Below are positions 5,824 to 63,611 of a stretch of 64,000 bases of DNA, in pieces; positions within the stretch are counted from its first letter, which is position 1, and the number at the start of each line of letters is the position of its first letter. Made by a program: the position numbers and the translations under genes. The stretch lies in IMG/VR virus record IMGVR_UViG_3300025319_000005, positions 1 to 64,000 of that record, one strand, 5' to 3'. The notes under the pieces were generated by a model. That model did not search any database. It was not told the DNA's origin and was given only the letters and a program-made list of their open reading frames with translations.

Positions 5824-5860
5824 TAATGTACTATACGAAATATAAAATTAAGGTGTTACA
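5824..5860 (-). promoter_or_regulatory. ECF-type phage promoter copy 1
   Basis: TGTAAC-N17-CGTATAGTACATTA upstream of 5799. Confidence 0.8.
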
Positions 5861-5923
5861 AAAATGATATATTTATTGATAATTTTTTATTAAAAACTTA
5901 TATTTATAGGAAAGCACAAATAT

Positions 5924-6901
5924 ATGAAAAAAATAAGACAAATAATAAGAAAGTTTCTTTTTGAAGCACATGGAATTCAAATTAGCGTTCACGAATTTTC
6001 AAAAGAGATAGCAACTGATATGTTAGGTGTTATAGAAGATAATTTTATAAGAATGAATAATGGAAGAGAATGGAAATTTGAAGTAGATTTTCAGTCTCCA
6101 GAAACCATAAAAAAAGACACAAAAATAAATATAGTTAAAATTGGATTTACTTTTATTTCTTCTGAGGTGTTTAAGGTGAGTGGAAGTTTTGATCCAAATA
6201 GAACAGTGCTTTTAACTGATGATAATTATAATGTTTTTATAAAATTAGAAATAGAAACAAATACAATAGAAAACGTTTTACAACAAATAGAATCAGTTGT
6301 TTCGCATGAACTTAATCATGCATTTGTTCATATAAAAGGACTGTCAGGTAAATTAAAAGCAAAAAACTTAAATTACTCAAATAAATTCACACGAGGAGAA
6401 TTAAAAACCTTAATAGATAAAACTCCAGCACTTAAGGAATTTACAAAAATGATTTATATGGCAAATCCTTATGAAGTGCAATCAAGAGTGCAACAATCAG
6501 CGTTAGAACTTAAATATATAGACAAAAAAGAAGCAAAAGATACTATAGATGCACTACTTCAGTACGCACCATTAAGAGATGCTAAAATGATGATTTCTTA
6601 TAATTTGGATGAAATAAATAAAGTTGATGGCCAGATATTAGAAAATTTCGTTAAAAAGTTTAATGACAACATTAAGTCAGCTTCAAAAGAAGAAAATCCA
6701 AAAACAATTTATAAAGTAGATAAGTTTTTTGATTATTGGAAAGATGTAATAAATAATGCCGGCGATAAACTTGCAAGGAAAATATATAAAATTGTCGCAG
6801 ATAAACATCAAATACACGAGGGTTGTGTTTATGAATTAACGGATGGAGGAGCTTATAACATAATATTCGGAGAATCATACGGATATAATAGCCATGGCTA
6901 A
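5924..6901 (+). CDS. HExxH-containing protein, possible late/virion gene
   Basis: SHELNHA motif; one of only two credible + strand genes; two TATATTTAT boxes upstream. Confidence 0.5.
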   Translation: MKKIRQIIRKFLFEAHGIQISVHEFSKEIATDMLGVIEDNFIRMNNGREWKFEVDFQSPETIKKDTKINIVKIGFTFISSEVFKVSGSFDPNRTVLLTDDNYNVFIKLEIETNTIENVLQQIESVVSHELNHAFVHIKGLSGKLKAKNLNYSNKFTRGELKTLIDKTPALKEFTKMIYMANPYEVQSRVQQSALELKYIDKKEAKDTIDALLQYAPLRDAKMMISYNLDEINKVDGQILENFVKKFNDNIKSASKEENPKTIYKVDKFFDYWKDVINNAGDKLARKIYKIVADKHQIHEGCVYELTDGGAYNIIFGESYGYNSHG

Positions 6902-6904
6902 CAT

Positions 6905-6941
6905 AAAAAATCCTGCCCAGAATATCTGAAACAGGATTTTT
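6905..6941. terminator. Bidirectional terminator between convergent genes
   Basis: AAAAAATCCTG...CAGGATTTTT inverted repeat. Confidence 0.6.
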
Positions 6942-6959
6942 AAAAATCACTTTTGAATT

Positions 6960-8066
6960 TTAAGACAACACAGATTCAAATACATTCCTATTAGCTTTGA
7001 TAATGGATTTAAGCTCTGATTTTCCACGATGTATTGTTGCTTTTATTGTTCCCAAAGGAATATTAAGCTCTTCTGCGATTTCGTTATAGGATTTCTCTTC
7101 AACAAAACGTTTATTCATAATAATACGGCAATTTTCTCCCAGTTTATTTACCGCCTTATTTATTAAAGATTTTTTTTGCTCTGTAATTAATATTTCTTCT
7201 GGATTAAGTGTTCCATCATCTTTCACATCAAATGAAGAATATTCATCCCCTTCGTTTCTCATTTTCTCAGAAGAAACTCCAGCACTCAAAGAAATTGTTT
7301 CCAATCTTTTTTTACGTGTGTAATCAATTAAAAAATTAGAAGCAATACGGCTTATCCAGCTATTAAACGTAAACGTCGGTTTGTACTGGTGAAGTTTTTC
7401 GAACACTCTAACGAATAACTCTGCAGTTAGGTCATCTGCCAAATCTTTATCAAATTTTAAACTTGAAGTATATTTATAATTTATTATAGCATAATAACGT
7501 TTATATAAAACAGAAAATTTTTCTTTTTTTCCAGATAAAATTTCATTTACAGCGTTAATATCTTCTTGATCTATTTTAGAAAAAACTTTTGTAGCAACAG
7601 AATTTTCTTTCGTTGCGACTTCTTTAATTATTTGTTCAACTTCTGTTACGGTTAAAACTTCCTCTGGTTTAGTTAAAACTTCTTTAAGAACCGGTTTAAC
7701 TTCTTTTTCAGGAGTAACAGTGCTGGATTTTGCAGGTTTAACCAATTTATTGATTTTATAATTTTTTTCTTTAGAAGAAGCAAATGTAACTTCAATCAAT
7801 TTATTTAATGAATTAATTCCTGACTTTAAACAATAACCCAAAAAAACTATGTTTTCTCCACTTAAATTTAAAATATCAACTATTCCAATTCTATCATTCG
7901 ATATTTTTTTAGCACCTGATTTTGATGGGTATGACCAATCTTTCCCTTTTCGCATAGCTTTGGTAAGTGGAAATACTCTTACGTTTAACTTATCATTTTT
8001 TACTTTCCCCATTAAAGAATATAATGGAGCCAATTTGATTGCTGAAATTTTTCCTGTGTTTTTCAT
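6960..8066 (-). CDS. ECF (sigma-70 group 4) RNA polymerase sigma factor with ~160-aa N-terminal extension
   Basis: Region 2 (DLTAELFVRVFEKLHQYKPTFTFNSWISRIASNFLIDYTRKK) and region 4 (KRFVEEKSYNEIAEELNIPLGTIKATIHRGKSELK), SigW/RpoE-like. Confidence 0.9.
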   Translation of the reverse strand: MKNTGKISAIKLAPLYSLMGKVKNDKLNVRVFPLTKAMRKGKDWSYPSKSGAKKISNDRIGIVDILNLSGENIVFLGYCLKSGINSLNKLIEVTFASSKEKNYKINKLVKPAKSSTVTPEKEVKPVLKEVLTKPEEVLTVTEVEQIIKEVATKENSVATKVFSKIDQEDINAVNEILSGKKEKFSVLYKRYYAIINYKYTSSLKFDKDLADDLTAELFVRVFEKLHQYKPTFTFNSWISRIASNFLIDYTRKKRLETISLSAGVSSEKMRNEGDEYSSFDVKDDGTLNPEEILITEQKKSLINKAVNKLGENCRIIMNKRFVEEKSYNEIAEELNIPLGTIKATIHRGKSELKSIIKANRNVFESVLS

Positions 8067-8629
8067 TTTTTCCGTTTTTTAAAGGTTTGTTTGCTCTTAT
8101 TTATAGTTCTTCTTCAAGTATTTGTTTATTATCTAAATCAGCCAAAGCCATTGCAATATTGAATTCTCCAATCAAAACCGCTTTTGCAAAATTTCCATGA
8201 TTTTTATCCCATTCTTGAGAAATTGTGCTTTCCTTATTAATAATACGTTTACACATATCTGCTATTACTAAGTTTTTAGAAAGCTGAAGCCTTTCTATCA
8301 TTTCCATGGCTGTTAACCAAATTGTTTTTGTTTTCACGTTATCTTTTTTTAAATTAAATGTTAATCTGGGTTTTATTTCTTTAATTTCTTTTTTTCCAAA
8401 TTCAAAATCAAAATAGTCTAAATCGTTAACATCATAAGAGTATTCATTATCTGCATCTAATTTTTCTTCAAGACGAACATCATTATCCTTTTTGATAACT
8501 GTTCTACGAATGCGAGAAGTTGATTTTTTCATATCTTTTTTCACATGAGTAGCCCATTCTCCATTGAGTGCTGAATTTAACTTATTTCCCGGTCTAACTT
8601 TTCCCATTACTTTGTGTTTATTTGTTTTA

Positions 8630-8666
8630 TAATGTACTATACAAAATTTAAATGACAGGTGTTACA
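8630..8666 (-). promoter_or_regulatory. ECF-type phage promoter copy 2 (heads the unit containing the sigma gene)
   Basis: TGTAAC-N17-TGTATAGTACATTA upstream of 8607. Confidence 0.8.
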
Positions 8667-8671
8667 AAATA

Positions 8672-9058
8672 TTAAAATAATTCCTTAACTGACTTTCCTC
8701 TATTAGAAAGTATGCCATGTTTAACTTTAGCTATTTTATCATCAGCATCAAGAATGTCATCAACATGCCTTAATCTTAATTTTTCAATAAAAGATTCCAC
8801 ATCTTCTTTAAGACAAAAACCAAAATACTTATTAAACAAAGTGTCAGATTTAAATCTTTCATCATCTATTTTGCCTAAATCTTCAATCCATACATGCCTA
8901 AATCCAACCATTATTTGTTTAGGAAATGACCAGATTTTTTCTTTCTTAACTGCAAGCGGTAGAGCTTTTACTTTAATACTAATTCCAGACTTTACATCTA
9001 AAGAACTGGAAACTAAATAAAGCTGAGCGTCTGTTATATCTAAATCGTCGATTTTCAT
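8672..9058 (-). CDS. Hypothetical protein resembling the N-terminal extension of the ECF sigma
   Basis: I.V..LPL...K.K.WS(F/Y)P...G(F/Y)CLK pattern shared with the sigma N-terminus. Confidence 0.45.
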   Translation of the reverse strand: MKIDDLDITDAQLYLVSSSLDVKSGISIKVKALPLAVKKEKIWSFPKQIMVGFRHVWIEDLGKIDDERFKSDTLFNKYFGFCLKEDVESFIEKLRLRHVDDILDADDKIAKVKHGILSNRGKSVKELF

Positions 9059-9463
9059 TTTAGATTGTTTTGAAGTTTACAATTTATAATTTCTCTTGTT
9101 TCTACATTTTTTTGAACAATTTGTATATGAATTCTTGCGTTATCCTTTCCATTCCATTTAACCTTCAAACCATTTCTTTCAAGTACATCAACAATTTCTT
9201 TACCTTTACCAGACCAAGATAGATAACATCCTTGACTTTCTTTTAAAGAATCTAAATCTTGATTATGATAAAAAATCACTTTATCATATTGTACATCTGG
9301 GACATCTGACCACCCACAAGAATTACAACAAGTATGATTCTCTTTAGCAAAATAACCCAAAGCTCTTAATTCATTAAAAGCATTTTTAATTGGAGCCCGG
9401 AATGAAAATTCTTTTTTTTCTGATTTAACTTTACCTTTTTTAATGATGTATAATTTCTGTTTA

Positions 9464-9500
9464 TAATGTACTATACAAGAAAAAATTGAGAGGTGTTACA
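9464..9500 (-). promoter_or_regulatory. ECF-type phage promoter copy 3
   Basis: TGTAAC-N17-TGTATAGTACATTA. Confidence 0.8.
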
Positions 9501-9518: not shown

Positions 9519-10001
9519 TTATGCTATTGATAATTTGCCATTCATTGTTTTTACTATTTGTTCCAACGGAGATTCTATTTTTTGAATTATAGTATTATTA
9601 ATTAAACTTTGAGATTTTATGTAATCATTCTTTTTATTTTGATAATATATTTTTTGCTTATTATTTAAAATTAATCTTTTTTCTTTAATTTTTTCTCTTT
9701 GTTGTTTTAATACTAATCCACAAACTCCTTTGTATAATAAATTTAATCCACTATTTAAACAATCAAATAATTTTATGTAATATGATTCAGCATCATCCAA
9801 TTTTTCTTTTTCGCAAATATGTATTATTTCAAAAATGTGGTTCTCGTATTTATATTTTTTTAAAGAGTTATATAGTTGCCTTTGACCTTTACAATTATAT
9901 AACTTATAAGCATTCCATCTTTTTTCTATATTTATAGATTTACCTATATAAATTTTTCCGTTTGGTGATGTTATTTTATAGATTCCACAAGTTTGTTTCA
10001 T
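9519..10001 (-). CDS. GIY-YIG endonuclease
   Basis: CGIYKITSPNGKIYIGKSINIEKRW; E..YI..F; start overlaps the recombinase stop (ATGA). Confidence 0.85.
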   Translation of the reverse strand: MKQTCGIYKITSPNGKIYIGKSINIEKRWNAYKLYNCKGQRQLYNSLKKYKYENHIFEIIHICEKEKLDDAESYYIKLFDCLNSGLNLLYKGVCGLVLKQQREKIKEKRLILNNKQKIYYQNKKNDYIKSQSLINNTIIQKIESPLEQIVKTMNGKLSIA

Positions 10002-10855
10002 AAATGAATATTACTAATAGGAGACGCAATTTTACTTATTAAATTATGTGAAATATGAGTGTAAATTGAAGTTGTTTTTACAGAAGAATGACCTAACAAT
10101 TTTTGAATAAGATTTATATCGACACCATTTTCAACCATATGAGTAGCTGATGTGTGTCTCATTAAGTGAGTATAAACTCTTTTGTTATCTATCCCGGCTT
10201 TCTTTGCCAATTGTTTAATTACATTACCAACGCTGTGTTCGGAATATTGTTCAGCATTATTTTGTCCAGTTAAAACATAAACAAACTGGTCTTTTTTTAT
10301 ATTGTACTCTTTGCAATAGTCTTTTAATATTATAATCAATTGTTCATTTAATCCAACTTGACGGTCTTTATTTCCCTTTGCTTGAATTACATTTATAATC
10401 ATTCGGCTCCGGTCAATGTGTTCCCATTTTAAATTTAATAATTCTGAAACCCGGAGGGAACAAGAATAAAGTAGGGCAAGAATCACTTTATGCTTTTTGT
10501 TTTCGCAGGCGTCAAACATTCGTTGGATTTCATTTACAGATAAAACAATCGGCAGTTTTTTGTTTTTCCTTGGACGTTCTATGTATTTGAATTTTTCAAT
10601 TCCGACCCTTGCAATTTTTTCATAATAAATTTTAATAGCTGAATGGTATCCTGAATGTGTTGATGGTTCCTTAAACTGACCAAGAAACTCAATTATCATT
10701 GTGGTATTAATTCTGTCTGGGTGCGTTACCCCTTTCTTTTCAAAATAAGCAAGAAATCCAGTGAAGTTGCTACAATAGTTAGAAACTGAATTTGGCGAGT
10801 AATTTCGGAACTCCATATAATTTCGGAGCTTCTGTACTGGGTCTGAAATTTCCAT
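9998..10855 (-). CDS. Tyrosine recombinase/integrase (XerD-like, N-terminal SAM-like domain)
   Basis: Catalytic R (SLRVSE), K (AKGNKDR), HxxRH (HLMRH), LLGHS and Y (TSIYTH) all intact. Confidence 0.95.
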   Translation of the reverse strand: MEISDPVQKLRNYMEFRNYSPNSVSNYCSNFTGFLAYFEKKGVTHPDRINTTMIIEFLGQFKEPSTHSGYHSAIKIYYEKIARVGIEKFKYIERPRKNKKLPIVLSVNEIQRMFDACENKKHKVILALLYSCSLRVSELLNLKWEHIDRSRMIINVIQAKGNKDRQVGLNEQLIIILKDYCKEYNIKKDQFVYVLTGQNNAEQYSEHSVGNVIKQLAKKAGIDNKRVYTHLMRHTSATHMVENGVDINLIQKLLGHSSVKTTSIYTHISHNLISKIASPISNIHL

Positions 10856-10964: not shown

Positions 10965-11795
10965 TCAAAACAATAAAAGGTTTGGTTTGTACTCATTAAT
11001 TCTGTTTGTCGCTAATTCAAAATATTCCTGTTTCTTTTCCATAATAATATAATTCCGCTTTAAGTTTTTACACACAACTCCAACCGTTCCACTTCCGCCA
11101 AACGGGTCCAACACAACATCGTTTTCATTAGTAAATGTTTTCACAAAAAACTCAACCAACTTTTCGGGGAATACTGCACTATGTTCCATCTTTGAAGTAA
11201 ATTGGTTTGTTACATTATTTGCGTTAATAACATTTGAAGGTCGTGCAAATTCAATGTCCTTAAAATTATCTCTATCCACTACCATTCCGCTTCCGTTGGT
11301 TGGTGTTTTACAATTCTTTCTAAATGCCCTGCTTTTTGTTTCCTCACTTACAGTTGTTCCACAAGCAAGTGCATTAAATGTAATTTGGTTTGGATTGTCT
11401 TTTGTAAAATGATACACAGGCTCAAATCCGTTTTTCATTCTCCCTTTCGTTCCAGTTGGGAAAGCATTTTTTGTCCAACAATATTCTTCCACAAACATAA
11501 ATCCCGTTTCTCTTTTCAGTCGGCAAATCAAATCATAAACATACAGGCTTCGTTCTCCTTTATTGGTGTGTGGCTTTATATTTAAAAAGAAACTTCCAGT
11601 AGGTTTTAAAATCCTTTTTATCTCTGCTCCAATAGGTAAAAACCAATCAATATATTCATTCTCGTTTGTACCTTCGTATGTTGCCTTTCTGCGTTCAGCA
11701 TAAGGCGGTGATGTAAAAACCAAATCAATACTATTAGTATCAATGGTTTTCATCAATTCTAAACAATCTCCTAAATAAACTTTATTGCTTTCCAT
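10965..11795 (-). CDS. N4-cytosine/N6-adenine DNA methyltransferase (beta class)
   Basis: FTSPPY catalytic motif, H.AVFP, VLDPFGGSGT SAM motif. Confidence 0.92.
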   Translation of the reverse strand: MESNKVYLGDCLELMKTIDTNSIDLVFTSPPYAERRKATYEGTNENEYIDWFLPIGAEIKRILKPTGSFFLNIKPHTNKGERSLYVYDLICRLKRETGFMFVEEYCWTKNAFPTGTKGRMKNGFEPVYHFTKDNPNQITFNALACGTTVSEETKSRAFRKNCKTPTNGSGMVVDRDNFKDIEFARPSNVINANNVTNQFTSKMEHSAVFPEKLVEFFVKTFTNENDVVLDPFGGSGTVGVVCKNLKRNYIIMEKKQEYFELATNRINEYKPNLLLF

Positions 11796-12140
11796 TAATC
11801 AACCGATATTGAAAGTATGCCCTTTCTTCCGTGTTTCACAAGTTCTTCTCCATCTTCATAAGCAACGGATAAGTGATGATTTTCATCAAGTATTTCTTCC
11901 TTATCAAAATCAATTATTCCATCAGGCAATTCATAAATATCATCTTCTTTGATAATATCTAACTGTTCCTGAGTTAATGGTTCTTTCAATTCGTAACGAA
12001 CCTTTACTGTTTTTGTAACATCAATGTAATTTTTCATATTATATTTATTTTATAGTTATTAATAAAAAGCCAACACACGCCACCTTTTTTTAAAATTAAA
12101 CAACAAACAACTGCCCCTCGCTCGAAAACCCTACGCACCA

Positions 12141-12221
12141 ACATAACACAGGCTACACGCAATAGCCCCACAAGCCCTCACACATCCAAAGCTACTGCAA
12201 GTGTAGCCCCGTCCGTTAGTT
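12141..12221 (-). mobile_element. attC-like hairpin 1
   Basis: - strand AACTAAC...GTTATGT ends; GCTACAC/GTGTAGC and GCA(A)TAGC/GCTA(C)TGC arms. Confidence 0.7.
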
Positions 12222-12288
12222 GCTATTTGTTTTCTTAAAATTAAAAGGCTCACGCTCGCTTAATTTTTTGCAAAAATTTAAAAGGTTA

Positions 12289-13084: not shown

Positions 13085-13735
13085 GCAAGGTTTAAAAATA
13101 AAGGATCACGCACTTCTTAAAGTTTTTCAAACTTTTAAGAGATTTTAATCCGTTTACGTTTTGTTTCCCAATCTTTCTCTCCAATTATTTTAGCCGATTT
13201 ATAAATTCGGTTTTCTTTGTCAGCGCAAACATACATTCTGCAATGTGGTTTATCCGAATAATGCCCCTTTACAGCCATCACAGGAAAGTATTGCGTTTCT
13301 TCCATTACAACAACGTGATACATATATTGTTTTCGTTTTCCAATCATAAAATGAAACACTTTTAATAAATCACCAATCAATATCTGTTTACCAGTTTGGT
13401 CGTAGTACGTATTATCTTTCAACTTTTCTAAATATTCTTTCATAATTAGTTCCATTTAAAAGGGTTTGTATAATCAATCTCTTTCCAAAAACCAACAACG
13501 CCAAACATCACAATACCTACTATTATTATCAAAACAATAGTAATGTAACTAAGTGGATTATATGGATTAAATCTTCTTGCTGTTGAATATCCTTTACCTA
13601 AGTGAGGTGTTCTTTTTTTATTTGATACTTCCTGTAGAATGAAAAGGAATTTTAATATATTTTTCATAATTTGTTTTAAAATGTAAGTACTATGTTTTCT
13701 GCCTCCACACGCCACCATTTATTTTTAAACCCAGC

Positions 13736-13823
13736 GTACAACACCAAATAGGACGCAAGGCTACCTAACTGCTTACTATTCATTACGCTTATACGCCCTG
13801 TCGCCTATTTTTGTACGTTAAAA
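13736..13823 (-). mobile_element. attC-like hairpin 3
   Basis: - strand TTTTAAC...GTTGTAC; AAATAGG/CCTATTT arms; shares the TTTGTACGTT end with hairpin 2. Confidence 0.6.
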
Positions 13824-14017
13824 ATCTCCAACTCATTATTTATATGGTGTTTTCGCCAATACTCTTTTTATCATTTTAATACTTTTCATCACTTGCCTGT
13901 CTGCACAAGTTTGTCCTTCAACTTTTCTGCTTCCAAGAATATTGGCAACTATCCTCAAAGTATCTTCTATTTGTTCGGCTTCAAACTTGTGTATTATTAA
14001 TTCTTCCATTTTTTGTT

Positions 14018-14383: not shown

Positions 14384-15561
14384 CTCTCATGCAAACAAGA
14401 GGGAAATAATTAGTATTAATATTATACCCAGTATCTTTACCATCTTCAAAAATAATTTGACCGGTTTCAATTTCTCCATTTGTACCATACGCCATTCCGT
14501 CAGAATCAAAGCCAGCTGGATATATTTGTCCACTTTCATCGTATACGCCTTTAACTAAATCAACAAATCCGTTTTTATACAGGATTTTCCCATTTTCAGA
14601 TAATAATCTGACCAATTTTTTCTTACTGTTATCTATTTTCGTAGCCATAATGTTAATTTTTCACAAATGTAGAAAAAAAGTAGAAATTGTATATTTTTTC
14701 TTTAAAAAGTTATTAACAATTATTCATCATCTTTAATTCCATCAAGTCTTTCTCCTGTATTATCCCAATATGGAGCCGTTGTAGAGTCATAAAAACCAAC
14801 ATATTCTGAATCTATACAATAATCCACTGTTTCAAGTAGAATTTTTTTCATTTGCTCAGTAGATAGTGTTTCAATCCATTTTTTTAATCTTTCTGTCCGA
14901 TTCATTTTTATTGAGATTTGTTGATTAGTTAATGATTATAGCTAATTGTATTATAAGCTGCATCAATCGCAAGTCCTTGTTCAATCCAACCATTGACATC
15001 TATGTGTAAAAGTGTTAGAAAGTCAATTATTTCAGCATCTAATTGAATACTATCGAATAATGTACGCTTGATATTTTCTTTAGGCCAAAGTTTGTTTAGT
15101 TGCTCTATTTCGTTTCTGGATAAACTGTCAAATTTTCTCAATATTAACTTGACTAAACTTGGGTTATAGTTTATTTTATTGATGACAACCACATTTAGTT
15201 TAATATCAATACCTTCAATAATTGAAAAGTCTGAGTTACCTTTAATATGGCAGGAACATCCAATAAAGAACCTGAAATCAATTGCACTTAATGTGGTTTT
15301 CATGTTGTTAAGCGTCTAATTCTTTGTCGGCTTGCAGTAATTTTTCTCCAAGAGCATTTTTATCAAGCTCCTTATTTAATAATGAAGTAGTGTAACATCC
15401 AGCAGAACAATATCCTAGATAAAAAGGATTTCCTTCTCCATATACACGTTTTACTTCTTTTGCTGAGTGGATTTTACCACATTCTTGGTTTTTACATACT
15501 CTTTTGTCTGTATCTACTTTTGATTTTTTCATGATGTTTTAATTTAATGTTAAATTTCTTA

Positions 15562-15598
15562 TAATGCACTATACAAGAAAAAAATGAGAGGTGTTACA
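15562..15598 (-). promoter_or_regulatory. ECF-type phage promoter copy 4
   Basis: TGTAAC-N17-TGTATAGTGCATTA. Confidence 0.8.
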
Positions 15599-16343: not shown

Positions 16344-16363
16344 TATATATTTTGTTTTGGTTA

Positions 16364-16400
16364 TAATGTACTATACAAAAAATAATTGAGAGGTGTTACA
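16364..16400 (-). promoter_or_regulatory. ECF-type phage promoter copy 5
   Basis: Consensus match upstream of 16343. Confidence 0.8.
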
Positions 16401-17902: not shown

Positions 17903-17939
17903 TAATGTGCTATACGAAATTTAAATGGGAGGTGTTACA
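17903..17939 (-). promoter_or_regulatory. ECF-type phage promoter copy 6
   Basis: TGTAAC-N17-CGTATAGCACATTA. Confidence 0.8.
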
Positions 17940-54101: not shown

Positions 54102-54138
54102 TAACGTACTATACGAATTTTAAATCTTAGGTGTTACA
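54102..54138 (-). promoter_or_regulatory. ECF-type phage promoter copy 16
   Basis: Consensus match within the 53800-54387 non-coding island. Confidence 0.8.
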
Positions 54139-54183: not shown

Positions 54184-54240
54184 GATATACGTAAAATCCA
54201 ATTGAATTTCTGTCACGAAAAAGAATTAAATTAGTGACAG
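54184..54240 (+). repeat. 57-bp hairpin element, near-identical inverted copy at 61227-61281
   Basis: GATATACGTAAAATCCAATT...CTGTCAC-GAAAA(A)GAATTAA(A)TTA-GTGACAG in both copies. Confidence 0.75.
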
Positions 54241-55174
54241 GATTTTAGATTTATATTTCGTATATCAATAATTTTTAAAAAACGGTTTGAGAAACGCCAG
54301 GTCAAAAAAAATCCCTGGCAGAAATTACCAGAGAAAAAGTATCATATATCAGGATTTTACATTTAGATTAGTATGAGTATCAGGATTTTACGCTCTTGAG
54401 TCGAGTTCCTTTTTAATTTTAGCAGCTTCTTCGAAGGCTTCAGTTGAGACCATTATGTTCATGTGACGTATTAGTTTGTCTGTGGAAATGTTTTTATAAT
54501 CAAATGCGTTGATTTGTAATTGGTCGGTATCACGATATAATAGATTATCTATTTCATTATCTTCCGGGTCTTCGTCATCATAATACTCATCTTCTTCGCT
54601 TCCATCTTTAGAAGGTTCACCTGGTTGTAATCCAAAGTTTATCTCCTTCATACCTATATCTATAAGTATTTGGCGTCCTAATTGTGGTTCTTTATTATAT
54701 TCGTATGTAGACTCAGCGAGTTCAGAAAAACCTTCCGGAAGTATTCCGTCAGCTATTCCGGATTCGTCTGATAGGCATCCTTGGGAATCGTAATAGGTAC
54801 GTGGAGTGATTAGAAAAAAATAATCTCCATCATTATTTGATAATTGAAAATAAAAATCTGATGCTTTCATGTAAGATTAAACGGAAAATCCTGCAATTTG
54901 TTTCTTTAGCTTTTCCTCTCCCTTAGTTTTAATATCGCTTCTCCCTATAAATTTCCTATTAGTCATTGTTTTATTTTCTTTCTTTTCAGATTGTGTAACT
55001 TTTTTGCTTGGAGTGAGGTTGTTATTAAACTTATCTTCTGCAGGCGTTTCTGGTTTATGTTTCTTATTATCAATGATATAACAGTCCCAACAACAGTATA
55101 AGTTTCTCCCTGATTTAACCGGTTTTCCACAAGCTGAATTGTGACAGGTTGGAATTATTTTGTCTAATGCTTTC

Positions 55175-56158: not shown

Positions 56159-57236
56159 ACGTTTGCAAATGTAGTAAATAATTATTTAGTTTAAACAAAA
56201 AGTCCAGTGATTATAATTTTTCACTGGACTTTCGTAGGGAGAATTAATCCTTCATCTTTTTGACTTTAACCTTTTCTTCGTCATCGTCATTTAAATAATC
56301 TTCCGCATCTTCGGTGTCATGACCATGTTTGTTCAGGCAGAAGAATTCTGGACCAGAACCAACTGCGAATAATCTTTCTACACAGGTTTTTACATCCATT
56401 ATTTCACTATCTGTTGTGATTGTAACGTCTCCAACATTATGACCTTCAGTTATGTCATAATTGATTTTTTCAAGGTCAGTTGAAGAATAAGGCTCCTCAG
56501 ATAAAATTTCAATTTGAACTACCGTCCGGTAGAATTTACGTTTACTTAATGACATGATGTTTTGTTTATTTGTGTTTAATTTATTTTTCTACTTCCTGTT
56601 TATAAATTTCAAGCATTTTATCTATTGCTTTATTCTCAACAGCATTTTTATTTGAGGATTTGTCAAAAATTCCTTTCAGAGCTATCTCTCCAACTTTTTT
56701 GCAAGGATAATATGTATCTTCACCTTTCGCAAGTTTTTCTCCGAACCGGTTTCCTTTTTGAGGCTCTTTTTGAAATCCTTTATACAATTCAAGAACCATT
56801 TTATCAAGATCAATTACATATGCGTATTCGCAAAAAAGAGAGTCTTTAATAAAATTAGTTCCATCCAGCATATGCTCAACTTTTCCTGACATTATTTCCG
56901 GTATATATTTTGCACCTTGTAATTCTCTTAATAAGGCATACCATTCTTCTGATTTGCCGGTTGATACACCACTATTAAAAAACTTATTGTATTTTTCCTG
57001 AATTAACTTTGATGGCTTTTTATTTTCATCTACAAGTTCAACTTTTTTACAATTCTTTTTGAACTGGTCCCAGCCATTGATTTCATCAATTTTCTGCAAT
57101 TCTATTACAACTTCTTCACCAACACCGCCGTCTGGATATCCATCAAATTGATTGTAAAATCCTTTGGCTTTTTCATCCTCAATGATTATAACTGCGCTTC
57201 TTGTTCCCATTTTATTTATGTGTTTTGGTTTATTTT

Positions 57237-57273
57237 ATAATGTACTATACGAAAATTAAATTAAGGTGTTACA
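57237..57273 (-). promoter_or_regulatory. ECF-type phage promoter copy 17
   Basis: Consensus match upstream of 57210. Confidence 0.8.
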
Positions 57274-57941
57274 AAATCAGAAGTAATGGGTGCGATTTTT
57301 TTGGTTATCGTTATCATTTATTTTGTGCAGTGAACCACTACTACATCTCACGTACTTCTTTTTTTAGTTGTTATTAAATTGATACTCAACATCTTCCTCG
57401 TCATAGAAAAATCCTTGATGTTCACAATCTTCCGGGTAAGGTAAAGAATCCCAAACTTTCTTCCAATTTTCTTTTGAAGGGAGATTCTCGACAAGTTTAG
57501 GAACTTTAAAGCCTCTATTTGCTACAACTGTTAAATTACATCCTCCATAGTCTTTCCATCCTTCTTTTATAAGTTGGTTTGCGGTTTTTCCTCCTTGAGA
57601 TGAAATTGGAGTCTCATAATTGTGAAAATCTTTTATATAAGCCAATTTAACTTTTCCATCTGTGATACCTCTTTCTGTAATTTTGCCGGAGAACACTTTT
57701 TTTCTTATATCGTCTGAGTTTTTACCGGTGATTCCATTCATTTCTCCAATGAGTGTATAAATATCTTTACCTCCAAACTCACCATAACCTCCATAATCTT
57801 CTTCTGTAAAAACCTGACCATCTTCTGTGATCATATGAACTTTAAAAGTTTCTCTAATTGATCCGGCATTAGGAATACTCTTTTGAGTATCCGATGTTTT
57901 AAAACTGAAATATCCCATAATATGTTTTTGTTTTTGATTTA

Positions 57942-57978
57942 TAATGTGCTATACAAATTTTAAATGAGAGGTGTTACA
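57942..57978 (-). promoter_or_regulatory. ECF-type phage promoter copy 18
   Basis: Consensus; encodes the VTPLI* end of ORF 57960-58967. Confidence 0.8.
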
Positions 57979-59193
57979 ACTTTGGATAATTTATTCGCAA
58001 ATACTTCATTGATTATTTCTTCAATGTATTCTTCTTCTTTTGTTAATGTTTCTTTACCGGATAGTTTTTGTTTGGCAACAATAAGCTTTTTTAAGTGTTC
58101 TTTGCTATTGTATTTTCCACCAATAGGGAGAAGTATGCCGAATCCTCCAAAAAGTATTTCTAATTCGTGTGTTGAACTCATTGTTCCTTCGTGAAATGAA
58201 GCTCCGTAAAGAATACAACAATTATATATTCCATTTAGATAATTCTCAATAGAAATCTTTTGTTCTTTTTTTGTACTTCCCTCAAGAGAATCTCCAAAGT
58301 GTCTTCCGTCAGAAGATGAAATCCAATTAAACATTCTATGGGAAGGAATCCCTCTTTTTCTTAATCCGGCTTCAATTTGTTTATCATTTACTGCAGTTCT
58401 CCCTGAAGAATGTCCAATCCATCCGTGAGCATATCCTTTTGAAACGTATTCTTTTAATTTTGGTGAGTTAAAAACTTCATCTGAAAACCCACCTTGATAT
58501 AATTTCGGATTTGCCGTTAAAATATCTAAATCCATCCAAAGAACCAATTTTTGTTTCTTTGCTTCCTTTTGAGATTTAATTTTTTCTCTTTCCCAGAAAG
58601 CTTTTTGTGCTGGTATGTTTCTGTCTTTTTTAAAACCTTTATCGTAATAGGATTTTACAAGAGAAATGAACTCTGAAGTGCTTTGAAACTCAGCATCCCG
58701 TCCGAATATCTTATTACTATGTAACCCTTTGTTATAGAACGTTTTATCAGCCTCAAGGTAAAATCCTACATATTTTGAGTCACCGTATATTTCAGCTATT
58801 GTTTCTCCGTTAAGTCCTGGAAATTTTTTGGATACGATTATTGAATTCAGTTCTATTTTGAAATCAATTTCTTTTGTATCGGTAACAATAACAAGAAATT
58901 CATCCATAGATGATGAAGACGCGAAACAAGAGTGAATGTGTTTAGTTATTACGATTGGCTTTTTCATTGTGTTTAGTTTTTAACCGGTTTGAATTCACAA
59001 AAATCTTCAAGGTCTCTTAAATCAATTCGACCAAATTTGACTGAGCTATAATAGCCTTGTCTTTCAAATCTCTTAACCCAATTTTTAAAAGCTTCAAGAG
59101 TTGCTTTTAACCCTGTGTATGTTTTACCCATATCAATAGAGATTCCATCTGGGGAGATTACATCATATTTTTTTGAGTTTTCCATTGTTTTCA

Positions 59194-59230
59194 TAATGTA
59201 CTATACGAATTTTAAATCTTAGGTGTTACA
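59194..59230 (-). promoter_or_regulatory. ECF-type phage promoter copy 19, abutting a start codon
   Basis: The motif's last A is the A of the ATG at 59194. Confidence 0.8.
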
Positions 59231-59531
59231 CTTTTAATGAATGTTTGTAACAAAATAGTTATAAACTTGTTACAAAACTACAACCAACCTTCTTTAAATT
59301 TTTCAGGCTTACCTTCTGTTATTCTCCATTTTTCAAACCATTCACCCCATTCTCCCCTTCTTGTTCTTGTGATTGTTACTTCATTATCATCCACAGTATT
59401 TTCCTCAATAAGACTTTTTAAATTCTTTTTGAGCTCTTGGTATGTTTTGAAGCTTTTATATTCTGCTGAAACATAGAAACTTTTTCTTACCCAGCAACCT
59501 GGTTTTTTACCTCTTCTTCTTTGTTGTGCCA

Positions 59532-60326
59532 TTATGCTGCTTTTTTAAGTTTAATGATAATTGACTTTGAAACTTCATTGGATTTTACGTTTGTTTTAAT
59601 TGCAAAGCCAGTTTTAAAAGCAAGTGAATTATCAAATCCTTTGAAAATTACTTTCTTATATCTCAAGCCAACAATAACTCCTTTTGGATCTAAGTGTCTT
59701 AAGTCATTTATATCGCCATCAATTACTTTATATCCCAAATGTGATTTAGGAACAACATCAAACACCATTGCAACATTCACTTTATTTCTAAGCATATCCA
59801 TAGCAATGGAATCATTTGTTTCTGACCGGCTGAAAACTAAGTTATAGTTTTTAGGGAGAACTGAATTAAACCTTGTATGATTTTTTGTATAATCATAGAA
59901 AATTACTTTTGGAAACAATTGAAAAATGTTTTTCCCATCTTTGATTTTAAGTTTTTCATAAGGGATATCAGAAGTTCCATTTAGCCGAATGACAAAGTTT
60001 CCTCCTTCAATTTTGTGTTTTACTTCTATCTGAGCTATTTCAGAATAAAGCGTTTTAAGAAATAGGGGTTGGTCGTGTAGAAATAATTCAGTTTTATTCG
60101 TTCTCCCCTTTTGAACTTGTGTTAATCCACCTTTACCGGAACCATATAAACACGACTTTGAACATCCTGCCGTTGCCATAGGACAAACAGTTTTACCTAA
60201 ACTATTTTGTTTATGGGGAGAAAGATATAAAATATATGTTTTCCAACCTAATTTTTCTCCCTTCATCGTTTTTATGTTTCGGGTAGTTAATAAAGAATTT
60301 GGAATGTAATATGGCAAAGTTTCCAT
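59532..60326 (-). CDS. Gp88-like phage protein
   Basis: ILYLSP...CPMA..GC...CL..SG.G; RLNGTSDI; FYDYTK; GD.NDLRHLDP.G.IVGL.YK. Confidence 0.75.
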   Translation of the reverse strand: METLPYYIPNSLLTTRNIKTMKGEKLGWKTYILYLSPHKQNSLGKTVCPMATAGCSKSCLYGSGKGGLTQVQKGRTNKTELFLHDQPLFLKTLYSEIAQIEVKHKIEGGNFVIRLNGTSDIPYEKLKIKDGKNIFQLFPKVIFYDYTKNHTRFNSVLPKNYNLVFSRSETNDSIAMDMLRNKVNVAMVFDVVPKSHLGYKVIDGDINDLRHLDPKGVIVGLRYKKVIFKGFDNSLAFKTGFAIKTNVKSNEVSKSIIIKLKKAA

Positions 60327-60372
60327 AGATAAATAGTTTAATTGGTTTGTAATGTGATATTTTGTTTATTTA

Positions 60373-60409
60373 TAATGCACTATACAAAATTAAATTGAGA
60401 CACGTTACA
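60373..60409 (-). promoter_or_regulatory. ECF-type phage promoter copy 20
   Basis: TGTAAC-N17-TGTATAGTGCATTA. Confidence 0.75.
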
Positions 60410-60600
60410 ATTATTTAAACAAACGTAATGTTTTATATAATTCTCCAATCTGAGCTTTTAGAATACGTTGTTCGTGTGCAATAGTATTTATTTGACGCTT
60501 ATTTGCGGAAAGTTTATTCTGAGCAGTTAATAACTCTCTGGAAACCATTTGCTTACACTTGTCGAAAACTTCTTTCTTTACATTCATTTTGTTCAGGATT

Positions 60601-61068
60601 TTACCGGTTTATTTTTGGTGGAGTTGTTTTAAAAGCTTTTTTATATATTTCTTTTGCTTGTTTCCAATCCTCTGCACCTCCGTCACATGAAATTTCAGTT
60701 TGTGGAAAATGGTGTTTTAATCTTAACATTGAAATTTTAACCATTAAATCGTATGGTTTACGTGCACTTTTACAGAACTCAAATATTAGTCCATTTTCTG
60801 CACGTCCTTCACTCTGTCTTTCTATCACAAAAGTTTCGTGGCTCATATCATCTTTGTTTTCGCCGTTGAATATAATAATATCATCGGTAAATTTAGGTTC
60901 TCCGGTTCCATCTCCGCCGGCCAATACAATTGATTTATCAATTTGATAATCAGCTGATTTTGAGCGGTCTGGTAAAAGTCCGGCTACTGTTTTTAATTCC
61001 TCTGATAGAATTTTGAATTTTTCGCTGTCCAGTTTTGCTGGAGTTTTGTAGTAGTTCGTATATCCGAT
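60601..61068 (-). CDS. Conserved-looking phage protein, probably longer than the track ORF and beginning at an ATC
   Basis: Frame open from ATC-GGA-TAT-ACG (xGYTNYY) to ...FCKSARKPYD; no in-frame ATG before the TTG at 60924. Confidence 0.5.
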   Translation of the reverse strand: MGYTNYYKTPAKLDSEKFKILSEELKTVAGLLPDRSKSADYQIDKSIVLAGGDGTGEPKFTDDIIIFNGENKDDMSHETFVIERQSEGRAENGLIFEFCKSARKPYDLMVKISMLRLKHHFPQTEISCDGGAEDWKQAKEIYKKAFKTTPPKINR

Positions 61069-61118
61069 AATTTCTAACGCCCTTTTGGGTGCGCCCTCAT
61101 TTAGTTAATACTGATTTA

Positions 61119-61155
61119 TAATGTACTATACAGAATTTAATTGATAGGTGTTACA
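61119..61155 (-). promoter_or_regulatory. ECF-type phage promoter copy 21
   Basis: Consensus match. Confidence 0.8.
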
Positions 61156-61226
61156 AAAACAGAAAACAAACATATCTGGTGTAAAATCCTAAAGCAAATA
61201 TATATACGCAAATTAAAACTATATTT

Positions 61227-61281
61227 CTGTCACTAATTAATTCTTTTCGTGACAGGAAATGAATTGGATTTTACGTATATC
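61227..61281 (-). repeat. Second copy of the CTGTCAC/GTGACAG hairpin element
   Basis: Reverse complement matches 54184-54240; flanked by GTAAAATCCT at 61181 and 61290. Confidence 0.75.
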
Positions 61282-61399
61282 CTTATTAGGTAAAATCCTT
61301 CAGCTGGTGCCTGCTGGCCAGGGATTTGGATTTGAGTTAAAAAGAAAAGAGCCGAACATTTAATGCCCGGCTCTAAGCTCGTCGTGTTTAAATAGGATT

Positions 61400-61591
61400 T
61401 TACTTCTTTGCAGATGTAGTATCCACTTTTACTTTAGTAGAATCAACAGCACCAGTGCTACCTGTTGATACAGGAGCTACAATAATGGTGCTATCAACTG
61501 CTGTTGCTGTTACTTCTTCAGTCTTAGCGGTGTTGCAAGAGGAAAAAATAAACGCTGCTAAAACGGCTGTTAATATCAATGTTTTTTTCAT
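61400..61591 (-). CDS. Small Thr/Ser/Val-rich lipoprotein
   Basis: MKKTLILTAVLAAFIFSSC lipobox. Confidence 0.6.
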   Translation of the reverse strand: MKKTLILTAVLAAFIFSSCNTAKTEEVTATAVDSTIIVAPVSTGSTGAVDSTKVKVDTTSAKK

Positions 61592-61914
61592 GGCTGTAAA
61601 TATAGATTAAAAAACAAAAAATCCAAGATTAACTCCCGGATTTTTTATTAACAATTTGTTCGATAAATTAGAATATTTCTTTTAAGGTTTTAAATCCAAG
61701 ACTATCATCAACTTTGATAGATATTTCTTCGATTTCACTATCTGGATTTATTTCAGCTTTTACGTGGTACATGAACTCGATAAGAGCTGTGAACGTATCC
61801 AAGTCCATTTGCTTTACATCATTAATTATGCGTTCTTCCATTTCTGCCACCGAAGTAGTTGCGCTTGCAGTGTCTACACTTAGTTTGTCCATGAGATATT
61901 TTGTTTTTGATTTG

Positions 61915-61949
61915 TAATGTACTACAAAATTAAATTCTTTGGTGTTATA
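61915..61949 (-). promoter_or_regulatory. ECF-type phage promoter copy 22 (degenerate, 2 nt short)
   Basis: TATAACACC...GTAGTACATTA. Confidence 0.5.
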
Positions 61950-62435
61950 TTTTAATTCATCGTTATCATTACATAATCAGTATCAACCAATTGAGCGAGC
62001 TCATTTATTTGATTAATTACTTTTTTAGGAACAAGCTCATACAATTTGCCTTTTAATTCACTTTTTTCTACTTCTGCAATTTCTCCTGAAATTTCTGCAA
62101 ATATATCACCCTGAAATATACGCTCACTCATATCGGTAACATCTTTAAATGCTTCACGACCTTTTAAAAGTTTAACTACATCATCCAGTAAAACATTTTC
62201 CGGCATGGTCATAATTGACATTTTGTGCATTGATTTTAATATATTATGCTTAACAAGTTCTATTTCCCCGCCAAATGCTCTTGCTTTTTTAATAGCTTCT
62301 CCCCTTGTGTATTCTTGTATTACTCCATAAGATGCTAAATATCCATTTCGTTTTTGGTCAGCTCTTGCATGGTTGTTTTCTTTTAAAACAACTCTGTATA
62401 ATTTCTTTTCCATGAGATATTTTGTTTTTTGGTTA

Positions 62436-62472
62436 TGATGTACTATACAATATTTAATTCTTTGGTGTTACA
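62436..62472 (-). promoter_or_regulatory. ECF-type phage promoter copy 23
   Basis: Consensus; the TAA of TGTAAC is the stop of ORF 62468-62704. Confidence 0.8.
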
Positions 62473-63134
62473 AGGCAGTTATTAAAAATTTAGCTATGGC
62501 TTCCAATTCTTCTGCATGAATTAAAATCGAGCCATTACCTTCTGCTTTATCTACTTCCAAGCCAGTAGAACTTAAATGTCCTATTCGACTTCGTTGTCCA
62601 TCAATTGTTCTGAATATCCAGAAGTTTCCAACACCATCATCAATAAATTCAAGTTTATGATTTTTGAATACAGGGTTTTCTATTATTTTGGTTATTGTTT
62701 TCATGGCTTATTTTCTTTCGTTGATTACCTGATAAATTAAATCCTCAACCACAAGACTCCAATTTGCTGTTTCATCCTGGTTTTGAGCTGCCGGATACCT
62801 TTTTAATACTTCTTGAATTTCCGCGTCAGTCAGTTCTTTTTTTAATGAATCGGCGATTGTTTCGACATCTAAGTCAATTATTTCGTTTTCCATGTTGTTA
62901 AGGTATTGAAATTATAACTTTTGCTTCAGGGAGAAACTGAGGCGTTACTTCAACTTTGGTTGTGTAAAATTCAGCATCATCAGGAGCAAGTCCTTGATGG
63001 TCAGCAACATCCTGCAACCCTCCTGCAATGTTGTTAGTAATTGTTTTTATATCTTCATCAGATGTGATTTTATCTGAAAAGGTAAGTGTTACTAAAAATG
63101 TGTGTGTCTTACTCATGGCGTTATGTTTTGTTTA

Positions 63135-63171
63135 CAATGTACTATACAAGAAATAATTGAATGGTGTTACA
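63135..63171 (-). promoter_or_regulatory. ECF-type phage promoter copy 24
   Basis: Identical to copy 25 over more than 40 bp. Confidence 0.8.
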
Positions 63172-63378
63172 AATATTATTCGACTTGTAAAATCCTATCA
63201 AGAATCATTCTCTCAACATTCCCATTCTTTATTTTGTTCGCCCACATACCGGCAATTGCTATAAACTCATCCAATGTATCGGCTTCATCAATTTCTTCTG
63301 TTATTTGTTCTAAATCATCTCCCTCTAAGGTGATGGATTTTTTGTATTCTGATTTCAATTTGTCTAATGTCATAGCGT

Positions 63379-63555
63379 TTAGTTTTTTACGTTAATTTCA
63401 GTCATTAATATAAAGTCTTCAAGTTCAGCTCCGTCAAGTGATTTACCACCGTCAGCATAAAATGAAGCAAGCATCATTTCACTTAACTCTTTGAGTTTTG
63501 TTGCAATTTCAACGGCTGTTCCACTTCCTGTTATTTTAATTTCTAATTCTTCCAT
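63379..63555 (-). CDS. 58-aa protein (below track cutoff)
   Basis: MEELEIKITGSGTAVEIATKLKELSEMM...INVKN*, directly after promoter copy 25. Confidence 0.6.
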   Translation of the reverse strand: MEELEIKITGSGTAVEIATKLKELSEMMLASFYADGGKSLDGAELEDFILMTEINVKN

Positions 63556-63574
63556 GATATTTTGTTTTTGTTTA

Positions 63575-63611
63575 CAATGTACTATACAAGAAATAATTGA
63601 ATGGTGTTACA
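63575..63611 (-). promoter_or_regulatory. ECF-type phage promoter copy 25
   Basis: TGTAACACCATTCAATTATTTCTTGTATAGTACATTG. Confidence 0.8.

Follow-up and report, generated by a model that had tools for sequence, protein, structure and literature searches.

Which factor reads a promoter-like motif that stands in many near-identical copies in front of the genes of a huge phage, and could the phage supply that factor itself? The question is raised by a stretch of DNA of 64,000 nucleotides, termed the window in the following, which comprises positions 1–64000 of the IMG/VR contig IMGVR_UViG_3300025319_000005 (212,632 bp) and which encodes at 6960–8066 a sigma factor of the extracytoplasmic function (ECF) type. 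With a probability of roughly 0.6, as inferred from the sequence evidence described below, this phage sigma factor reads the motif and, its gene sitting behind one of the copies, feeds back on its own synthesis.

The same DNA is contained in the NCBI record CACVIJ010000001.1 (assembly GCA_902731165.1) of 503,412 bp, and the window sequence, which has a G+C content of 27–33%, is present in about 20 metagenome runs from groundwater, sediment, and soil. A search of a reference phage collection with the window DNA yielded no near-identical match. The element is treated here as a huge phage because of its listing in IMG/VR, PHROG matches for several of its proteins, and its size class (PMC7162821). 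Its host appears to be Bacteroidota-like, since Shine-Dalgarno-like words are found in only 7 of 220 genes, TAnnTTTG boxes occur before genes, and all nearest cellular relatives of the sigma factor belong to the Bacteroidota. The regions upstream of the genes consist of A to 49%.

The motif array

The motif, TGTAAC-N17-YGTATAGTACATTA, is present in the window in 24 clear copies and one degenerate copy. A strict search for TGTAAC-N15-19-YGTATAGTA returned 18 matches, all of them on the minus strand, where 0.00 were expected from 100 shuffles. The -10 block YGTATAGTACATTA taken alone with up to two mismatches was found 24 times against 1.26 expected, a looser regular expression gave 23 copies, and a scan with a position weight matrix (PWM) gave the 24 clear ones, again all on the minus strand. 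The gap between TGTAAC and YGTA measures 17 nt in 23 copies and 16 nt in the copy at 57273, and the degenerate copy at about 61951–61915 is shortened and has TATAAC in place of TGTAAC. A further candidate at 28702–28715 is without a -35 block and was rejected. Each copy is co-oriented with its downstream gene. An open reading frame (ORF) of at least 30 amino acids starting with ATG begins 0–49 nt past the predicted start site in 20 of the 24 window copies, and the remaining four lead into an ORF without a start codon or into non-coding leaders. The initial annotation of the window had listed 25 copies on the minus strand just upstream of gene starts, separated by a fixed gap of 17 nt with one copy 2 nt short. 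Strand and position were borne out, and the count holds with the degenerate copy included, but the exceptional gap at 57273 is in fact only 1 nt short.

The listed number nevertheless understated the array. For a view beyond the window, fetched pieces of the same contig were tiled, and a PWM scan over them revealed 71 copies in 96.6 kb of contig, located between 5.8 and 93.3 kb. Their scores range from 21 to 57, with 67 of the 71 above 30, as compared to a top shuffle score of 11.5. The minus strand carries 68 copies (5,860 to 92,125) and the plus strand three (92,493–93,323), which sit just beyond the point of divergence at 92.3 kb. Neither the 12 kb after the array nor the 10 kb beyond the start of the window contain a copy, and the strict pattern had zero matches from 96.7 to 212.6 kb of the contig. 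As the flanking stretches are free of copies, the array forms a delimited block which spans about 87.5 kb and in which copies follow each other every 1.2 kb on average.

Start site and promoter geometry

Counted from the T of TGTAAC, the ATG of the first ORF lies at a distance of exactly 36 in 10 of 69 copies of the phage, in 28 of 59 copies of a relative with a 519-kb contig, and in 4 of 34 copies of other relatives. Distances of 37–45 are found in none of the phage copies and in two each of both relative sets. The shortest distance in all three sets is 34 (one copy), and the other distances are mostly 48 or more, with a mode at 55–56. Because the distribution is bimodal with a spike at exactly 36, a start site can be deduced, and the motif is well supported as a predicted promoter with a fixed start site. 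The distances would be the signature of leaderless mRNAs starting at the A of AUG, beside leadered mRNAs with about 20 nt in front of the start codon; the predicted share of leaderless transcripts is about one in seven for the phage and about half for one relative. Behind one copy, a tRNA-Phe gene (contig position 73119, outside the window) begins 6 nt past the deduced start position.

With +1 at position 36, TGTAAC occupies -36 to -31 and is followed by A or G at -30 and C at -29. The second block, from -14 to -3, reads T(C/T/G)GTATAGTACA, with G-T-A at -12 to -10, and comprises a -10 element (C/T/G)GTATAG followed by TACAT(T). The bases at -1 and +1 are T and A in 56 and 53 of 58 copies, respectively. 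A sequence logo consists of two blocks, and the information in the spacer is near zero in the 519-kb relative. All seeded copies agree in TGTAAC, G-12, T-11, and A-10. In front of GTA the phage has C (22 of 58 copies), T (36), or G (about 11 copies), and the 519-kb relative nearly always has C.

Sigma-W promoters have the -35 consensus T-36 G-35 A-34 A-33 A-32 C-31 (PMC6713349) and a selective -10 sequence CGTA, the last base of which separates them from sigma-M and sigma-X promoters (PMC5758882). ECF promoter spacers range from 14 to 17 bp (PMC5758882). ECF sigma factors flip out a base of the -10 element, from which start sites are counted 10 nt away (PMC5758882, PMC7776599), and their start sites prefer a pyrimidine-purine pair at -1/+1, with A at the beginning of leaderless mRNAs (PMC7776599). 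In the phage motif the -35 element ends in AAC at about -33 to -31, the low-information spacer falls within the known range of lengths, and the A of YGTA is found at -10, the position of the base flipped by ECF sigma factors. This match with ECF numbering is independent of the set-up, since +1 was derived from the ATG distances and the agreement was not built into the analysis. The predicted geometry is thus well supported as that of an ECF promoter and of sigma-W promoters in particular. Regarding the AAC/CGT architecture of ECF promoters that had been ascribed to the motif, the geometry fits, but the C of CGT is variable (C/T/G) and conservation of the -10 block continues up to -3.

It is extremely unlikely that the repeats are not promoters at all but recombination or packaging sites, operators, or a mobile cassette lying between genes. 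Such a role would agree with the 31 or more identical bases shared by the copies, a length at which short-read assemblies break up and copies become falsely joined, and with the 9-mer GTAAAATCC, which shows that other repeat families exist in the genome. The DNA runs of four other samples yielded near-identical contigs which end at repeats and show zero variation inside the promoter copies; across 57241–63240 these contigs stop or falsely join at the copies at 57964–57983, 59193–59237, and 63171–63175, and they break also at a hairpin repeat element at 61239–61281. Recombination sites or operators would, however, leave unexplained the strict alignment of the copies with the direction of the genes, the bimodal distribution of ATG distances with its spike at 36, the copy positioned 6 nt before a tRNA gene, the two-block logo with a free spacer, and the T/A at -1/+1.

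The sigma factor

The protein and its additional domain are encoded as follows.
6960–8066, minus strand: ECF-type sigma factor of 368 amino acids (Pfam, TIGR02937, AlphaFold2 model, PHROG 1740 sigma factor)
7767–8066, minus strand: coding region of its N-terminal domain, seven beta strands and a C-terminal helix (AlphaFold2 model)

Pfam detects Sigma70_r2 (residues 190–254) and r4_2 (302–352) and no r3. The only sigma domains are sigma2 and sigma4, with neither region 3 nor region 1.1, as is characteristic of ECF factors. The sigma70-ECF model TIGR02937 is matched with 88.9 bits (cutoff 42.9). The best NCBIfam match is SigW with 99 bits as compared to an equivalog cutoff of 209, and a second model reached 71.9 against 243.1 (NF007223 / TIGR02948). 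Because 99 bits is far under the equivalog cutoff, the phage protein is not considered a SigW ortholog. The best match in the PDB is again SigW (5wuq, E 9e-18). By these profile matches the product of 6960–8066 is a true group-4 (ECF) sigma factor with SigW as its closest known type.

The AlphaFold2 model is divided into an N-terminal domain (residues 11–100), a disordered linker (101–159), sigma2 (about 160–252), a second linker (253–288), and sigma4 (about 289–365). Compact ECF factors have about 170–220 amino acids and no extra domain. The phage ECF sigma factor of the initial annotation has been retained as a real member according to Pfam and TIGR02937, but it is not a plain one, as a folded N-terminal domain of 100 amino acids and a linker of 60 amino acids have been added. 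Modelled alone, the N-terminal domain yields a predicted local distance difference test score (pLDDT) of 84 and a predicted template modelling score (pTM) of 0.73. It has no match in Pfam or NCBIfam and no significant fold match in the PDB, where only weak PH-like look-alikes appeared. The best match in the AlphaFold database is an uncharacterised protein with a template modelling score of 0.63, and the Atlas matches are likewise uncharacterised. Only 17 matches were found among 1.84 billion representatives, mostly from the same sigma family, and the domain thus appears to be specific to this phage clade.

Residues of SigW which contact its promoter could be traced in the phage protein. Lysine 170 of SigW, which contacts the G paired with C-31, corresponds to K342, and arginine 175, which contacts G-35, to R347 (PMC6713349); both are invariant, the former in 11 family members. 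Threonine 171, which contacts A-34 (PMC6713349), is replaced by A, S, or V in the family, and the motif has T at -34, which is the sole -35 position where it departs from the sigma-W consensus. This correspondence is consistent with recognition of the motif by the phage sigma factor and is no proof of it, because such residues are common among ECF factors. No other sigma-like ORF was found in the 105.7 kb examined, and in about 115 kb examined no ORF exceeds 522 amino acids, so none is of the size of a polymerase.

Co-inheritance of sigma factor and motif

About a dozen metagenomic contigs encode full-length homologs of the sigma factor, with 33–60% identity. On every homolog contig with enough flanking DNA the motif is present with the same core (loci L001, L120–L122, L124, L126, L127, L130–L132, and the 519-kb contig), and sigma factor and motif are thus found to travel together across related genomes, a co-occurrence which could also be explained by common descent. 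Four contigs with more distant ECF factors (24–29% identity) have no motif copy. In eight loci the sigma gene is preceded by a copy of the same direction at a distance of 66 nt to 2.5 kb, and in L120 it is the first gene behind the copy; three short or partial loci have no copy within 2.5 kb upstream of the sigma gene. As the motif core is identical in all lineages, covariation between sigma factor and motif is unusable as evidence.

The sigma factors of L129 and L130 have 219–220 amino acids and lack the N-terminal domain. Seven motif copies are found in L130, and the short L129 contig shows none. If the sigma factor reads the motif, the N-terminal domain would therefore be accessory, since the L130 protein is devoid of it and yet accompanied by seven copies. 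The nearest cellular relatives form a Bacteroidota ECF family with at least about 600 species representatives, and the recognition helix of this cellular family is similar to that of the phage sigma factor (TVKAQLFR versus TIKATIHR).

A promoter class separate from host-type promoters

The primary sigma factor of Bacteroidota reads TTTG at -33 and TAnnTTTG at -7 rather than TTGACA and TATAAT. In the phage, TAnnTTTG boxes sit 4–50 nt before several genes.
56166–56199, minus strand: host-type sigma-A promoter TTTG-N22-TACATTTG, 7 nt before the ATG of an M28 peptidase gene; its -7 box is at 56173
44607, 38738, 14671, 4278, and 1566, minus strand: further -7 boxes
50127, plus strand: further -7 box
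More such boxes lie outside the array. The full TTTG/TAnnTTTG pattern occurs 7 times in the window, without enrichment over the 6.0 expected. The consensus of the repeated motif has no TAnnTTTG, apart from chance cases in a few T-rich spacers, and position -13 is C in the 519-kb relative. The motif thus appears to represent a promoter class separate from the host sigma-A boxes, and as sigma-A boxes stand at other phage genes, a different specificity factor would be needed for it. The boxes at 56166–56199, 4271–4278, and 1559–1566 (minus strand) and at 50127–50134 (plus strand) are located only 4–7 nt before an ATG, and leaderless mRNAs therefore seem to arise from sigma-A-type promoters as well.

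The motif can also be written as a sigma-70-like promoter, GTAACA-N18-TATAGT, to be read by a primary-type sigma factor of host or phage and not by the ECF protein, and several copies indeed score 9 of 12 in a consensus scan, with TATAGT ending 5 nt before the deduced start site. This explanation is nonetheless very improbable. The host is Bacteroidota-like, with rare Shine-Dalgarno words and with TAnnTTTG boxes at the right distances; matches of the sigma-70 type are not enriched (111 versus 106 expected); the invariant G-12 and the AAC of the -35 element are ECF hallmarks; and a spacer of 18–19 nt is poor for sigma-70.

Which factor reads the promoters

In the favoured scheme, host core RNA polymerase together with the SigW-like phage ECF factor would transcribe the motif promoters. 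At least 71 promoters would in this way drive about 87.5 kb with small accessory and DNA-modification genes, one tRNA gene, and some non-coding leaders, independently of host sigma-A. Since the sigma gene is part of a unit headed by the motif, the factor, which would act without a recognisable anti-sigma partner, would amplify itself once some of it is present and switch on the whole block. Its first molecules might be owed to read-through from a sigma-A promoter (for example, the box at 14671), to a host ECF factor, or to delivery with the virion; read-through from 14671 is possible because only one weak terminator-like site lies in between. A phage-encoded sigma factor and a repeated phage-specific promoter distinct from that of the host are both found in this DNA, and jumbo phages with sigma genes are thought to recruit host core RNA polymerase (PMC7824862).

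Several observations weigh against this assignment. No sigma-A box is found within 2.5 kb upstream of the sigma gene in the phage, which complicates bootstrapping; the sigma-A-like box upstream of the partner-sigma operon (see below) in L120, L123, and L130 may instead be a diverged motif copy. With three DNA methylases, a ligase, and tiny genes, the regulon looks immediate-early, so that its reader would be needed as soon as infection begins. Known ECF promoters have a shorter conserved -10 block than the one seen here from -14 to -3, only 22 of 58 copies have the C of CGT, and the score of 9 of 12 against the canonical sigma-70 promoter has been mentioned above. The motif is nearly invariant, while the sigma factor diverges to 33% identity. 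About 380 kb of the 503-kb genome lie outside the examined part and could encode other sigma factors or a polymerase. None of the RNA runs searched for the window stretch contain it. Finally, in 80 loci of the nearest cellular ECF family (273 kb) TGTAAC-N16-18-CGTA was found 0 times versus 1.6 expected, and no shared upstream bipartite motif was seen.

Some of these points suggest that the motif might define a class of early promoters read by a factor already present at infection, i.e., a host SigW-like ECF factor, which the envelope stress of infection might release, or a polymerase or sigma factor delivered by the virion. The phage sigma factor would then be merely one product of the class, which it might reinforce, or it might direct later, different promoters elsewhere in the genome. 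This possibility is rather unlikely, although the methylases, the ligase, and the many small genes look early, and the sigma gene is inside the regulon wherever an upstream copy has been found, as are phage middle-gene sigma factors in early units. In addition, related ECF factors with a similar recognition helix are found in the many Bacteroidota species mentioned above, the motif is invariant despite the divergence of the phage sigma factor, and the DNA examined is a minor part of the genome. On the other hand, the result for the 80 cellular loci counts against a host ECF factor, too. About 25 kb examined outside the array shows only sigma-A-type boxes and no second conserved bipartite motif to which the phage sigma factor could be directed. 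No polymerase-sized ORF is present in about 115 kb, and phages with their own RNA polymerase usually have no sigma-70-family genes (PMC7824862). A promoter of a single-subunit (T7-like) or virion RNA polymerase is expected to be one contiguous block and to be accompanied by a polymerase gene; the logo of the motif is bipartite, and the search for such a gene covered about 115 kb of the 503-kb genome.

A combination of both ideas is an infection-triggered, self-locking switch, which is a doubtful proposal. Adsorption or entry of DNA would be the source of an envelope stress which frees a conserved host SigW-like ECF factor, and this would fire the phage promoters first, that of the sigma operon included. 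The phage sigma factor, free of an anti-sigma factor, would then seize core RNA polymerase irreversibly, so that about 87.5 kb of takeover genes would be expressed, many of them as leaderless mRNAs. The N-terminal domain, its free paralog, and the partner gene, both described in the following section, might tune the switch, for example, by reading the extended -10 element and discriminator or by displacing host sigma-A.

The sigma operon and its neighbours

The sigma gene had been placed second behind the copy at 8666, after the gene 8101–8607, and this order was confirmed.
8067–8100, minus strand: conserved leader with the sequence GAGCAAACAAAC...AAAACGG, immediately upstream of the start codon of the sigma gene
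8101–8607, minus strand: partner gene, first gene of the sigma operon, encoding a small basic protein with the N-terminus MGKxRPGNKxN..LNGEW
8672–9058, minus strand: free paralog of the sigma N-terminal domain, 128 amino acids, two genes upstream of the sigma gene

The sigma leader (about 40 nt) could be aligned in 10 of 11 lineages and persists down to 33% sigma identity; it might serve as a signal in translation or processing. The N-terminal sequence of the partner protein is encoded just upstream of the sigma gene in L001, L120, L122–L124, L129, and L130. Neither the partner (8101–8607) nor the neighbouring gene product (5924–6901) has a match in Pfam, NCBIfam, or PHROG, and no anti-sigma factor could be recognised among them; the partner protein is a candidate co-factor or anti-sigma factor. 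The relationship of the paralog at 8672–9058 to the sigma N-terminal domain is supported by hhalign (probability 97.9%, E 6e-13) and by hmmsearch (E 5e-15).

Promoter copies and gene content of the block

The copies in the window, all on the minus strand, are listed with their predicted start sites and downstream features.
5820–5860: start 5824, then gene 5488–5799; last copy of the array
8626–8666: start 8630; heads the partner-sigma operon
9460–9500: start 9464, then a reading frame (to 9055) that lacks an ATG close to its 5' end
15558–15598: start 15562, then gene 15308–15532
16360–16400: start 16364, then gene 15606–16343 (N6 DNA methylase)
17899–17939: start 17903, then gene 17526–17888
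19326–19366: start 19330; upstream of the DNA ligase region 18193–18972
20261–20301: start 20265, then gene 19770–20246
21358–21398: start 21362, a leader of 49 nt with a small hairpin, then gene 21053–21313
23723–23763: weaker copy with the -10 block CGTATTTTAC, start 23727, then gene 23115–23708
24632–24672: start 24636, then gene 24399–24617
27663–27703: start 27667, then gene 27471–27653
28619–28659: predicted leaderless, the ATG of gene 28300–28623 being the predicted start site
34469–34509: weak copy, start 34473, then gene 34044–34457
48953–48993: start 48957, then gene 47449–48924 (Eco57I-like methylase), then a helicase gene
54098–54138: start 54102, then about 300 nt without an ORF
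57234–57273: copy with the 16-nt gap, start about 57238, then gene 56581–57210
57938–57978: start 57942, then gene 57364–57918
59190–59230: predicted leaderless, the ATG of gene 58973–59194 being the predicted start site
60369–60409: start 60373, then gene 59532–60326 (GP88 family)
61115–61155: start 61119, then a conserved structured leader of 60 nt shared with contig position 64523
61915–61951: degenerate copy, TATAAC, spacer and -10 block shortened; upstream of gene 61668–61892
62432–62472: start 62436, then gene 61952–62413
63131–63171: start 63135, then gene 62898–63116
63571–63611: start 63575, then gene 63379–63555

Behind the copy at 9500 the frame stays open almost from the start site onwards (9360–9464, minus strand) with no ATG, GTG, or TTG near its 5' end, and it may use an unusual start codon. 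The leader of 60 nt behind the copy at 61155 was found in the same form behind two copies (window 60847–61119, minus strand; contig 64440–64523) and folds into a hairpin GGG-CGNA-CCC inside an outer stem of 5 bp; no ATG ORF of at least 30 amino acids lies within about 160 nt of the start site of the window copy.

Among the genes of the block are those for three DNA methylases, GNAT proteins, a helicase, a ligase, and a recombinase, together with many tiny genes. Its annotated enzymes include the following.
10965–11795, 15606–16343, and 47449–48924, minus strand: three DNA methyltransferases of different families
18193–18972: ATP-dependent ligase
9998–10855: tyrosine recombinase
9519–10001: GIY-YIG protein

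Other repeats and side observations

A sequence GGAAAC...GGCTATACACC at 31.6–32.4 kb was considered as a second ECF-type motif and rejected, as it is a coding repeat for LETHxKLEGYTP. In the region 31606–32400 (minus strand), two small paralogous genes end in tandem repeats with a unit of about 65 nt, some of which are separated by stop codons. The 9-mer GTAAAATCC occurs 33 times in the window (1.07 expected). It was likewise rejected as an alternative sigma target, because its occurrence on both strands and inside genes is not promoter-like. Eleven of its copies are found in an ORF-less stretch of 1.2 kb (48925–50139, cluster 49075–49986), and about 28 copies in 21 kb of L001; it may represent origin iterons or binding sites of a phage regulator.

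A repeated element of about 60 nt, composed of ATATACGTAAAATCCAATT... and then the inverted repeat TGTCACGAA...TTCGTGACA, is located in intergenic positions between transcription units, where it may act as a terminator or an operator. Assembly contigs of other samples break at this element, too.
54192–54250 and 61239–61281 of the window: element of about 60 nt
66866, 75371, 77848, 80194, 83345, 87020, 89323, 92190, and 93756 of the contig: further copies of the element

Two GC-rich non-coding islands (12038–12288 and 13719–13840, minus strand) in this genome of 29% G+C have no Rfam match at E values up to 1 and may be non-coding RNAs; a scan of the window together with these islands gave no Rfam family. 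Beyond the window, a region of 690 nt between divergent genes (L136:16071–16759, contig about 100.9–101.6 kb) contains four copies of TTGTGTAAC and two near-variants. The TTGTGTAAC copies are spaced about 34–58 nt apart and represent the -35 word of the motif without the -10 block. At L136:18767–19888 (contig about 103.6–104.8 kb) an intact-looking gene for a protein of 373 amino acids with the Pfam domain Thiol_cytolysin (cholesterol-dependent cytolysin family) is preceded by a sigma-A-type box; such a gene is unexpected in a phage.

Relation to known systems and significance

Sigma factors of the phages T4 (gp55) and phiEco32 (gp36) are known to redirect host core RNA polymerase to a phage-specific promoter class, which gives a temporal class of genes. 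The SPO1 proteins gp28 and gp33/34 similarly redirect host core RNA polymerase to their own promoter class and thereby to a temporal class of genes (PMC13401047). In contrast to the protein described here, which is a well-conserved ECF factor with sigma2 and sigma4 and a predicted promoter with both -35 and -10 blocks, the sigma factors of these three phages have diverged strongly and cannot be assigned clearly to the ECF group. Their genes are transcribed from early promoters of the host sigma factor and do not stand behind their own promoter type, whereas positive feedback is proposed for the present phage.

With sigma-W of B. subtilis (TGAAAC-N16-CGTA) the phage system shares a group-4 sigma factor, the -35 element at -36 to -31, a -10 element resembling CGTA, the residues contacting G-35 and the base pair of C-31, and the location of each sigma gene behind its own promoter type. 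It differs in the added N-terminal domain of 100 amino acids with its linker, in having no recognisable RsiW-like anti-sigma factor, and in the motif, which has T instead of A at -34, a gap of 17 instead of 16, a variable C of CGT, and a -10 block reaching to -3. The sigma-W regulon is a stress regulon, and the predicted phage regulon consists of at least 71 near-identical promoters. An ECF-type sigma factor of Bacteroidota phages is also known as the 'sigma-W factor' of crAss-like and Prevotella phages. These proteins are 27–31% identical over the core and have no N-terminal domain, the related locus L003 is without the motif, and none of the papers found gives a set of promoters for them. 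The promoters of the Bacteroidota primary sigma factor (-33 TTTG, -7 TAnnTTTG) occur in the same genome, often 4–7 nt before the ATG, and have a different consensus.

N-terminal extensions of ECF factors are rare and regulatory where they have been studied, and phage ECF factors were not captured in the ECF reclassification (PMC7826278). BldN/ECF121, SigC/ECF36s4, and SigR'/ECF12 also have an N-terminal segment fused to the ECF core. Their extensions are short or are pro-sequences, in contrast to the phage extension, which is predicted to be an autonomous beta-rich domain with a free paralog nearby. In the literature on huge or Bacteroidota phages no description of the motif or of an ECF regulon was found, and the huge-phage paper touches on phage sigma-70 genes only in passing. 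A phage sigma factor with cognate promoters is a known scheme. What stands out in the present case is the scale, the predicted leaderless transcripts, and the fusion of the ECF core to a new domain.

Gene regulation in huge phages (above 200 kb) is almost unknown, and no member of this clade has been cultured. One sequence rule now predicts at least 71 transcription units together with their start sites in such a phage, and one protein is the probable master regulator of about one-sixth of a genome of 503 kb. The phage provides a natural case of a well-conserved ECF sigma factor with an unusual fused domain. For Bacteroidota, whose promoters differ from the E. coli or Bacillus type, it would offer a compact and probably orthogonal pair of sigma factor and promoter. 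The question of how a regulon starts up when its sigma gene sits behind its own promoter type has thereby become testable.

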